Assembly (NCBI GenBank): GCA_002269645.1
Contig: NIVC01002860.1
Span: 62,001-126,000 of the forward strand
Direction of reading: 5' to 3'
Source of the DNA: Macrostomum lignano
Taxonomy: Eukaryota
DNA: 64,000 nt
The position numbers and the translations under genes are program-made. The notes below the pieces were generated by a model. It was given only the letters and a program-made list of their open reading frames with translations. It was not told where the DNA came from and searched no databases. Position 1 is the stretch's first letter; every line of letters starts with the position of its first letter. Shown piece by piece: positions 18,201 through 21,200 of this stretch.

Positions 18201-21200
18201 GATTGCTAATCTAGCCTATCATGGATGCAGGAATAGAATGGATTGCTAATCTAGCCTATCATGGGTGCAGGAATAGAATGGATTGCTAATCTAGCCTATC
18301 AGGGCTGCAGGACTAGAATGGATCGCTAATCTAGCCTATCATGGGTGCAGGAATAGAATGGATTGCTAATCTAGCCTATCATGTGTGCAGGAATAGAATG
18401 GATTGCTAATCTCGCCTATCATGGGTGCAGGAATAGAATGGATTGCTAATCTAGCCTATCATGGGTGCAGGAATAGAATGGATTGCTAATCTAGCCTATC
18501 ACGGATGCAGGAATAGAATGGATTGCTAATCTAGCCTATCATGAGTGCAGGAATAGAATGGATTGCTAATCTAGCCTATCATGTGTGCAGGAATAGAATG
18601 GATTGCTAATCTAGCCTATCATGGGTGCAGGAATAGAATGGATTGCTAATCTAGCCTACCATGGATGCGGGAATAGAATGGATTTCCAGTATACTCCGCC
18701 CCTAACTCAGTCACCCCAGCCGGCTGTCCAGTCGGACACTGGCAGTTTTGGCTAGAAGTCTGTCAGCCAATCAGCAGTCTCGCAGGGCAGGCCAGGCTGT
18801 TCAATCAACTGATAAAGGGGCCTTTCTGACGCTCTCAGCGCTCCATTCAAACCACAAAATTCCACAAAGTTCGCGAGGAAGGAATCATGAATTTAAAAAA
18901 ATTCGTCTTTTAACAAAACTTGACTGATTTTAAAACTATCAGATGGCGCCGAGGCAAACTATTTAAAAGTGCAACTCAGAGTTGGCTGAACATCTATTAG
19001 AGCTCGGCGATGAGGCGCCGGGCAGCCTCCGAAATTGCAGCCGCCGCGCTGCTTCTGTGCGCCTCTGTGGCTGCCGTGACAAATCGTGAGTTTAACTGGG
19101 AGATACTGAGTGAGATGCTGGGGGAGATACCGAGTGCGACACAGGGGGAGACACTGGGTGAGATACTGAGTCAGACCAACATACCCTGGTAGACACACTG
19201 TGAGACACACTGGAAGACACACTGGGAGACACACTGGGGAGACACACTGGGAGACACACTGGGAGACACACTGGAAGACACACTGGAAGACACACTGGGA
19301 GACACACTGTGAGACACACTGGGAGACACACTGGAAGACACACTGGAAGACACACAGGGAGACACACTGGAAGACACACTGGGAGACACACTGGGAGACA
19401 CACTGGGAGACACACTGGGAGACACACTGGGAGACACACTGGGAGACACACTGGGAGACACACTGTGAGACACACTGGGAGACACACTGGGAGACACACT
19501 GGGAGACACACTGGTAGACACACTGTGAGACACACTGGGAGACACACTGGGAGACACACTGGGAGACACACTGGGAGACACACTTGGAGACACACTGTGA
19601 GACACACTGTGAGACACAATGGTAGACACAATGAGAGACACACTGTTAAACTAGCCGAGTCAAACAGAAGCAGAACAGCAGGGACAGAAGCAGAACACAG
19701 CAGGAACAGAAGCAGAACACAGCAGGAGCAGAAGCAGAACACAGCAGGAGCAGAAGCAGAACACAGCAGGAACAGAAGCAGAACACAGCAGGAACAGAAG
19801 CAGAACAGCAGGAACAGAAGCAGAACAGCAGGAACAGAAGCAGAACAGCAGGAACAGAAGCAGAACACAGCAGGAACAGAAGCAGAACAGCAGGAACAGA
19901 AGCAGAACAGCAGGAACAGAAGCAGAACAGCGGGAACAGAAGCAGAACAGCGGGAACAGAAGCAGAACACAGCAGGAACAGAAGCAGAACAGCAGGAACA
20001 GAAGCAGAACACAGCAGGAACAGAAGCAGAACAGCAGGAACAGAAGCAGAACAGCAGGAACAGAAGCAGAACAGCAGGAACAGAAGCAGAACAGCAGGAA
20101 CAGAAGCAGAACACAGCAGGAACAGAAGCAGAACAGCAGGAACAGAAGCAGAACAGCAGGAACAGAAGCAGAACAGCAGGAACAGAAGCAGAACAGCAGG
20201 AACAGAAGCAGAACAGCAGGAACAGAAGCACGCACAGAACTGCAAACAGTGCTACAAACTGTTTTAAAGTTCAACTTGGTCACCGCAGCCTCAGCTGCTG
20301 GGTCTGAGCCGTGGGAATCCTGCTGGCTCCCTGAGGTGTTTTCTTGCAGTCCAAAGGAAAACTGGCCCTGTGAATTGCAGCCTTATGCTGAATTCCCTTT
20401 TATGAAACGTTTCACTCCCCGAAGCGAGGCAATCGAAGCTCACTGGGCAGCTCAAAAGTGCTCGCTACTCATGCGGCTGAGCAGCTGGCTTCGCTACTCT
20501 CTCGCAGGGGGGGGGGCTTTGACATAACGATTTCTTCAGCCGTTATGTCTGCTTTCACAAGAGCTTCTTTTAGTAGAGTTTCCATATCCTTTTCTTTCGC
20601 AGCCCGTCAGTCACCCTGCTGTTCAGTTGACTGCGAAGGGGGGGGGGCTCAGCGCCTCCCGAGTGACATATGGCGAGCCAAGTGCCGGCTCCGAGGCGCT
20701 GAGGGGAAATTATTATGGGAATATCCTCGCCCCTCCCCAAGCGCCCAGCCAATTCGCGCGGGTCCACCGTGGGGTGTTTATTTATCGACTAATTGCACCT
20801 TGCAGCTCCGGCGCCTCCCCCCGGAGACTACGGGGAGAATTCTCCCCTCCGATCCGTAGCGCGCCCCCCGCACTTCGATGGGACTTATTTCTCTCAGGAT
20901 CGACATTTAAGGGTCAATTTTGGCGGCCTGACAGGGCGAGGCAGCGGTGCAGCTCCTCATTAGGGGTTATCAATCAGGTGTGGGCCTCGGCAACCGGTTG
21001 TCACTGATCAGAGAATCGGGGAACAGGTGCAGCTCCTCACACCCGCCCGAATCCCACAGCTCCGGTGGGCCCCCGGGTTAGCTTAAAAGTACATTTCAGC
21101 GAGACGTCCCGCCAGCCCCCCAGGCTGTCAGGGGCGGCGCAGCGCTGGATTGTAGCGAAAATTGTGAATTCGAAATCGATTGAAACACCTGGCCTGCAGG

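Follow-up and report, generated by a model that had tools for sequence, protein, structure and literature searches.

The neurexin gene and a probable second 5' coding exon

The window, i.e. the whole 64,000-nucleotide (nt) stretch of DNA analysed here, is base-for-base identical to NIVC01002860.1:62001-126000, a scaffold interval of the Macrostomum lignano assembly GCA_002269645.1, and harbors on its + strand a divergent alpha-type neurexin gene with 1 + 15 coding exons. A further short coding exon with its own start codon is located at 19010-19085, between exon 1 and the first of the 15 shared exons. We consider it likely that this stretch serves the gene as a real alternative 5' coding exon and is used productively; the form that it encodes lies outside the described neurexin classes, and the exon itself is already contained in public gene models. 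The coding features (CDS, coding sequence; TM, transmembrane segment) are the following:

5449-6284, + strand: exon 1 of the alpha form, encoding signal peptide, LNS1 and EGF1; ATG at 5449; donor AATC|GTGAGA at 6284/6285, phase 1
19010-19085, + strand: putative alternative 5' exon, coding part, with 25 codons and one base (C, 19085) of the junction codon; phase 1
19086-19091, + strand: its 5' splice site GTGAGT; a degenerate 12-nt array starts 11 nt further on, at 19097
23573-23719, + strand: first shared exon, start of LNS2; acceptor cctgcag|TTCGCG at 23572/23573
26463-54612, + strand: 14 other shared coding exons, according to the splice model and its translation, for LNS2-LNS6, EGF2, EGF3, stalk, TM and a tail ending in ...KEWYV
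Shared exons, first part, + strand: 26463-26653, 32244-32393, 36737-37099, 37666-38155, 40737-40960
Shared exons, second part, + strand: 45007-45121, 48286-48629, 49063-49443, 50009-50246, 50658-50851
Shared exons, third part, + strand: 51752-51923, 52915-53348, 53812-53948, 54270-54612
29307-29324, + strand: optional 18-nt microexon in LNS2, encoding DKQEIL (ctcaag|GAC...CTG|gtgagt); present in the public protein PAA54791.1, absent from PAA86589.1

A tblastn comparison with NRXN2 places LNS1 to LNS6 and the EGF repeats in canonical order along the + strand, and the best match of the gene product in the PDB is neurexin-1-alpha. The last exon encodes a single TM segment and a short tail with a PDZ-binding C-terminus, which matches a Syndecan-type tail in Pfam; the terminal residues KEWYV also occur in Owenia, and REWYV is found in the neurexin of a Logan contig that is described below. 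PAA54791.1 represents the window's own annotated gene as a partial CDS, in which exon 1 is joined to the acceptor at 23573, and the translation of the shared exons is identical to this protein except for the microexon. The microexon is an alternative splice site in an invertebrate neurexin and reminiscent of SS2 of the vertebrate genes.

A first-pass annotation, which was made from the sequence alone, had proposed that the ATG at 19010 opens a peptide with a basic start, a hydrophobic core and small residues, and this sequence could be confirmed. The 25 codons begin with MRRR (+3), continue with a 15-residue core (Kyte-Doolittle mean of 2.74 over the best 10 residues) and end in ASVAA/VT, so that hydropathy and charge heuristics predict a signal peptide. 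An in-frame TAG is located at 18998-19000, three codons before the ATG at 19010-19012. The donor AATC|GTGAGT lies in the phase of exon 1, as had been claimed, and the last five exonic bases (AAATC) are shared with exon 1 rather than the four that had been counted; GT[G/A]AG is an enriched donor motif of M. lignano (PMC8629364). The two exon ends (6275-6290 and 19076-19091) have the same ten bases over the splice site, AAATC|GTGAG, with no wider similarity seen between them.

When position 19085 is joined to 23573, the junction codon C+TT encodes Leu. A 16-exon model that was built independently, with GT..AG at all junctions, results in exactly 1332 amino acids (aa) with the end at 54612, the same length as the open frame that had been put forward. 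The layout of this product is signal peptide-LNS2-LNS3-EGF-LNS4-LNS5-EGF-LNS6-TM-tail, with 28% similarity to vertebrate NRXN2/3 over 98% of its length (E=6e-128). In an alignment with bovine/rat neurexin-1-alpha, the exon at 23573 matches the opening residues of LNS2 (KEEYIATFKG...; 3r05, 3qcw, 3poy) with E=2e-19, and the Pfam match of this entry region to Laminin_G_2 has E=7e-18. In agreement with the earlier statement, only LNS1-EGF1 would be missing from the encoded protein.

The reading frame also restricts how the exon can be used. Inclusion as a cassette by cis-splicing cannot hold the frame, because the TAG at 18998-19000 falls in the required frame. For the AG dinucleotides that follow this stop (exon starts at 19001 and 19003), neither exon length is divisible by 3, and a cis exon of 18839-19085 (247 nt) shifts the frame and meets a stop. 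From this we conclude that the ATG-initiated reading is the only productive one.

According to the proposed scheme, transcripts starting with the 19010 exon would skip exon 1 and with it the original signal peptide, LNS1 and EGF1. Translation would initiate at ATG 19010 and yield the 25-residue predicted signal peptide, and the exon would be spliced in phase 1 to the acceptor of exon 1 at 23573. The product would be a type I membrane neurexin with LNS2-LNS3-EGF-LNS4-LNS5-EGF-LNS6, a TM and a PDZ-binding tail, and its predicted ectodomain spans the same region as the crystallised L2-L6 fragment of neurexin-1-alpha (3poy).

Transcript models, the paralog and similar forms in other taxa

An exhaustive protein search with the exon 37666-38154 as query retrieved PAA86589.1 (BOX15_Mlig002077g3, UniProt A0A267GMS1), a protein of 687 aa that is 99% identical to the window. 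It starts with the identical 25-residue peptide, followed immediately by the beginning of LNS2, and it is encoded on NIVC01000272.1, a collinear homeolog of the locus (L001). A word-indexed protein search yielded no M. lignano protein, even for queries identical to PAA86589.1 and PAA54791.1, and its negatives do not indicate absence. The annotation of the assembly was based on StringTie/TACO assemblies of RNA-seq data and on mapped de novo transcripts, with TBONE cutting transcripts at spliced-leader (SL) or poly(A) sites and TransDecoder calling the open reading frames (ORFs) (PMC5730564). Since PAA86589.1 originates from this RNA-seq-built annotation, the junction 19085^23573, which the first-pass annotation had asked of transcripts, has transcript support in the species, namely in the model of the homeolog. 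The acceptor at 23573 is common to both 5' exons, with the junction CEN-LREET in PAA54791.1 and VTN-LREET in PAA86589.1, and the two models together indicate that both exons are in use. The exon had been called hidden, which applies only in part: it is already deposited in GenBank and UniProt as the start of a 'hypothetical protein', and no paper describing a form that starts at LNS2 was found.

M. lignano contains a second, older neurexin gene at two further loci (L003 and L004; proteins PAA62984.1 and PAA53330.1), whose exons, taken singly, share 43-54% identity with their counterparts in the window gene. At L003:4581-4644, 2.8 kb before the LNS2 exon, this paralog has an exon with an ATG that reads MLRQVLRLSLLALLVQTAWQL and ends in G|GTGAGT in phase 1, and the same exon is found at L004. 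When it is joined to the next three exons, the third of which ends at 8401, the frame reads into the annotated paralog protein. The support from the paralog is thus positional and structural in kind, consisting of the same intron, phase, kind of peptide and donor. No coding sequence for LNS1 or EGF1 was found upstream of the paralog exon in the 3-4.5 kb covered. A putative promoter homology between the paralogs (AGGCTGTT...TAAAG...ATTCAA) was discarded, since its local score of 21 was not significant against a shuffle mean of 21.4.

A fixed scan for similar exons was applied to both strands of 271,530 nt, comprising the window and two paralogous loci. It selected ATG-initiated ORFs that comprise 15-45 codons, begin with a net positive charge, have an uncharged core of 8 residues with a mean hydropathy of >=2.4, and reach a GT[AG]AG donor without an in-frame stop before it. 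Besides the 19010 exon, it matched only the paralog exon at the corresponding position. An earlier scan of both window strands with a stricter core picked out four candidates, all of them on the + strand, among which the 19010 exon ranked best and was the only one in phase 1. These figures are indicative and do not represent a formal probability.

A comparable N-terminal architecture was found in other taxa. The Logan contig SRR17902662_19585 (4236 nt), from an organism not close to M. lignano, is a complete mRNA with a 1295-aa ORF that extends to ...REWYV and is preceded by a leader of 236 nt, in which a stop in the same frame lies four codons ahead of the ATG. Its N-terminus consists of a signal peptide, MQCLVVTAALFGSWWTLAFVGFLVVPTSCS, followed directly by EKVPIVSAFTGQEY, which aligns at about residue 240-260 of alpha-neurexins, i.e. 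at the start of LNS2. In the schistosome Heterobilharzia americana, models of 1825/1827 aa and of 1578/1580 aa differ only at the N-terminus, where 60 residues with hydrophobic stretches replace 307 residues of the LNS1 region and both types join DSHSILNLNGQTNATFHFD at the start of LNS2 (look-alike models CAH8450419.1 and CAH8450384.1). Like the window form, the H. americana and Logan forms place a Met and a hydrophobic N-terminus straight onto LNS2 and run at full length to a tail of the ...EWYV type. The signal peptides of the three have no mutual sequence similarity, and the H. americana and Logan forms are known from gene models and from an mRNA contig, respectively.

This layout, shared by the paralog and by other invertebrates, points to a type of isoform that is old or recurrent, not to a single case. 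It also makes the earlier suggestion of an independently evolved start doubtful, given the positional counterpart in the paralog and the similar architecture in the H. americana models and the Logan mRNA. Further invertebrate models begin at the LNS2 boundary without a signal peptide; these may be partial. Two other groups of candidates were rejected as LNS2-start forms: the honeybee neurexin variants share one promoter and result from skipped exons, and truncated mammalian NRXN2 models are partial models beginning within LNS1.

Competing explanations for the 5' end, exon 1 and the transcript model

Several points weigh against the productive use of the 19010 exon as an alternative 5' exon. 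The public models were read as CDS ranges, and the transcript may therefore extend 5' of the ATG. PAA86589.1 does not continue into the remaining shared exons; it ends after exon 45007-45121 in an extra terminal exon within intron 8, and the corresponding stretch of the window (47065-47391) contains an in-frame stop and indels relative to L001:41139-41462 and is not open. A full-length short isoform is not documented among the public models, the sole one stopping at 687 aa. The window and the homeolog differ at only 3 positions in the 416 nt around the 19010 exon, which is uninformative on exon conservation, since the unique introns are 98.5% identical and the CDS 99.15%. The window gene and the paralog have no detectable sequence similarity in their signal peptides or in the flanks upstream of these. 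The 230-nt run without differences between L003 and L004 that surrounds the paralog exon ranks only 13th in length, with many longer non-exonic runs. The signal-peptide call relies on hydropathy and charge rules, the criteria of the fixed scan were chosen post hoc after both exons had been seen, and a loose scan without charge rules gave hundreds of matches, mostly within tandem arrays. As a separate observation on intron 8, AATAAA signals follow the terminal stretch in the window at 47649, 47796 and 47868.

A further point of this kind concerns the origin of the 5' end. The 19010 exon belongs to an island of 412 nt, which is bounded by a 40-nt array and the 12-nt array and is unique within the window. 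Upstream of the ATG, the following features are present:

17956-18684, no strand: minisatellite of 40-nt units, 18 copies; upstream bound of the unique island
18685-19009, + strand: unique upstream flank; candidate promoter and 5' untranslated region (UTR), or end of an outron
18696, 18767, 18811, 18847 and 18960, + strand: flank motifs CCGCCC, CCAAT (one), GATAAAG, initiator-like TCAAACC and TATTTAA, respectively
18887 and 18943, + strand: upstream ATGs in the flank

The GC-box, CCAAT and TATA-like motifs that had been proposed as signs of an internal promoter are indeed present, and CCAAT, GATAAAG and the initiator-like TCAAACC lie 160-245 nt before the ATG. Their frequency is at the level of chance in about 400 nt, and they are thus no commoner than expected.

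An alternative that leaves the exon and the protein unchanged dispenses with the internal promoter. The SL would be trans-spliced into the 18685-19009 flank of a pre-mRNA from the alpha promoter or from elsewhere, for instance at ctctcag|CGCTCC (18838/18839) or ttag|AGC (19000/19001), and the leader would provide the cap and the 5' end. The SL of M. lignano has 35 nt and ends in ATG (...TTGCATG) (PMC8629364). Such an origin is plausible in a species in which 30-39% of the genes undergo trans-splicing and for which transcripts are cut at SL sites by the annotation pipeline (PMC5730564, PMC8629364). The site at 18838/18839, the best acceptor-like site in the flank, attains a score in the range spanned by the gene's true acceptors, and the ATG of an SL joined at 19001 would be in frame, giving M-SSA-MRRR.... 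Against this, none of the candidates in the flank fits the enriched trans-acceptor motif [T/C]TNCAG (PMC8629364), and according to a rule quoted in the same study an acceptor with an upstream cis donor, here that of exon 1, is expected to be cis-spliced. Of the alternatives, we regard trans-splicing as the one with most in its favor, while still judging it unlikely; a promoter of its own in the 325-nt flank appears somewhat more likely.

A second alternative accepts the 19010 exon as productive and concerns its partner. In a three-frame read, exon 1 as assembled contains two 1-nt frameshifts, at about 5725-5765 and in the C-run 5966-5969, and the ORF from ATG 5449 hits a stop at about 6075; the reading of LNS1-EGF1 requires one extra base at each of the two sites. 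With these corrections, the C-run reads GGLP|PQLR, compared with GGLPPELR of neurexin-1-alpha, and the alignment to neurexin-1-alpha runs through GGLPPQLR. Pfam then detects Laminin_G_2 at residues 51-204, over both sites, with 20.9 bits (curated cut-off 22.9) and EGF at residues 244-274 with 17.8 bits (curated cut-off 21.5). If the frameshifts were real, the alpha start would be dead in this copy and the 19010 exon would be the only productive start of the locus. This would be in line with the presence of two 1-nt deletions in the 836 nt of exon 1, whereas the remaining 3999 nt of CDS are free of them, with the early stop of the 5449 ORF, and with the public protein records, in which neither an intact LNS1 model of the gene nor a product of the homeolog's exon-1 ORF was found. 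Conversely, the partial CDS of PAA54791.1 starts at 5972, 1-3 nt past the C-run, which is as expected from an indel between transcript and genome. Both sites lie in 68% GC sequence of a PacBio-based assembly, the three frames keep a recognisable stop-free LNS1-EGF1 apart from the shifts, and a transcript still joins exon 1 to 23573. The frameshifts are therefore probably an assembly error, and the loss of the alpha start seems improbable to us.

The least likely explanation, in our estimate, is that the 19010 exon has no productive role, being a cassette or a cryptic exon between exon 1 and the LNS2 exon, or that it is a transcript-assembly artefact, with an ORF that is a TransDecoder by-product of an aberrant transcript and a peptide and phase that are coincidental. 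It draws on the 3' end of PAA86589.1 in intron 8, which also looks aberrant, on the extent of the UTR, which is not fixed by CDS ranges, and on the frame-shifting 247-nt exon that cis use of 18838 would create, a behaviour typical of poison exons; moreover, GTGAG-like strings are abundant in and next to the 12-nt array past the donor, and Ala/Leu/Arg-rich peptides are easily encoded by GC-rich DNA. It leaves unaccounted for, however, that the paralog contains an independent ORF which starts with an ATG, resembles a signal peptide and agrees in phase and position, that the fixed scan returned no other such ORF in 271 kb, and that a like architecture is found in the complete Logan mRNA and in the schistosome annotation.

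Tandem arrays also occur at splice sites of this gene. Minisatellites begin at or contain real 5' splice sites at 37100-37444, 38136-38268 and 40955-41541, and further array sites were noted at 23728, 49472, 50285, 50875, 51940 and 53970. The units include GTGAGAT (49 copies), a 34-mer comprising an exon end and its donor (3.9 copies) and a 23-mer with AAG|GTGAGG (28 copies), and the donors repeated in this way could serve as alternative 5' splice sites. Other arrays stop just short of acceptors, and many introns consist mostly of an array that abuts the splice sites. The arrays at 17956-18684 and 30757-31961 have a common 18-nt core, ATGGATTGCTAATCTAGC, in opposite orientation, and an array of the 12-mer CTGGGAGACACA occurs twice in intron 1 (19186-19645 and 21759-22696).

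Downstream, a PITP gene (IP_trans, vibrator-like) is located tail-to-tail with the neurexin gene on the - strand (window 56600-62700). The same tail-to-tail pair is found at the downstream ends of the loci L001-L004, i.e. at all four M. lignano loci, from which we conclude that the pair was duplicated as a block in the older as well as in the recent duplication. Within LNS6, a poly-basic insert of 21 residues is encoded at 53043-53105 in a loop just before HFEG and is retained in the public proteins. A basic cluster is present at the matching position of the paralog (RPRSRRGRRS) and of Owenia (HRGKRQVERHFEG), and the insert may represent a proprotein-convertase site.

Relation to the described neurexin classes

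The first-pass annotation had held that the described short neurexins are the beta and gamma forms, which agrees with a 2025 review that lists alpha, beta and gamma neurexins (PMC12665717). According to the same source, invertebrates make alpha and gamma forms with little alternative processing, and gamma is the sole short class reported for them. Our literature search returned no description of an LNS2-start neurexin and no paper on a Macrostomum neurexin.

Beta-neurexin of the vertebrate Nrxn1-3 genes is alike in that an alternative 5' exon, placed within an alpha-gene intron and coding for a separate signal peptide, is joined without loss of frame to a shared exon where an LNS domain begins, and in that the TM and the PDZ-binding tail are shared with the alpha form. 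It differs by entering at LNS6 and having one LNS, whereas the M. lignano form enters at LNS2 and comprises five LNS and two EGF domains. Beta-neurexin also contains a beta-specific His-rich stretch, while the 19010 exon codes for little past the signal peptide, and its promoter has been shown experimentally, in contrast to the M. lignano promoter, a candidate known from motifs. The intron before LNS6 in the window gene consists of about 400 nt of tandem repeat and contains no beta-like exon. Gamma-neurexin (mouse Nrxn1 gamma; the short form of C. elegans/Drosophila) is likewise a short isoform from an internal start, and it is devoid of any LNS or EGF domain, whereas the M. lignano form loses LNS1-EGF1 only. 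With alpha-neurexin, finally, the short form has in common the gene, the exons from LNS2 on, the acceptor at 23573, the TM and the ...EWYV tail, and it differs in the lack of LNS1 and EGF1 and in its signal peptide.

The proposed form would follow the beta-neurexin principle, here with LNS2 as the point at which a 5' exon carrying a separate signal peptide joins the gene. Tentatively, it might even belong to an undescribed class of invertebrate neurexins, alpha minus LNS1-EGF1, that is either old or repeatedly evolved and would be produced from a signal-peptide-only exon in a conserved phase-1 intron before LNS2; such a class would comprise forms of both M. lignano paralogs, of schistosomes and of one further animal lineage at least, and would maybe provide the sole productive start in the window copy if the frameshifts are real. 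For annotation, the locus calls for caution, since the exon is filed under 'hypothetical protein' and the gene's alpha start is disrupted as assembled.

In vertebrates, LNS1 has been implicated in the binding of IgSF21 and alpha2delta-3 (PMC12665717). If our interpretation is true, the loss of LNS1-EGF1 would remove the domain linked to these two partners, and the rigid LNS2-LNS5 rod as well as the neuroligin-binding LNS6 would be kept. The isoform could be tested in M. lignano, for which transgenesis, RNAi and in situ methods exist, and, if real and conserved, it would represent a natural experiment on the role of LNS1.

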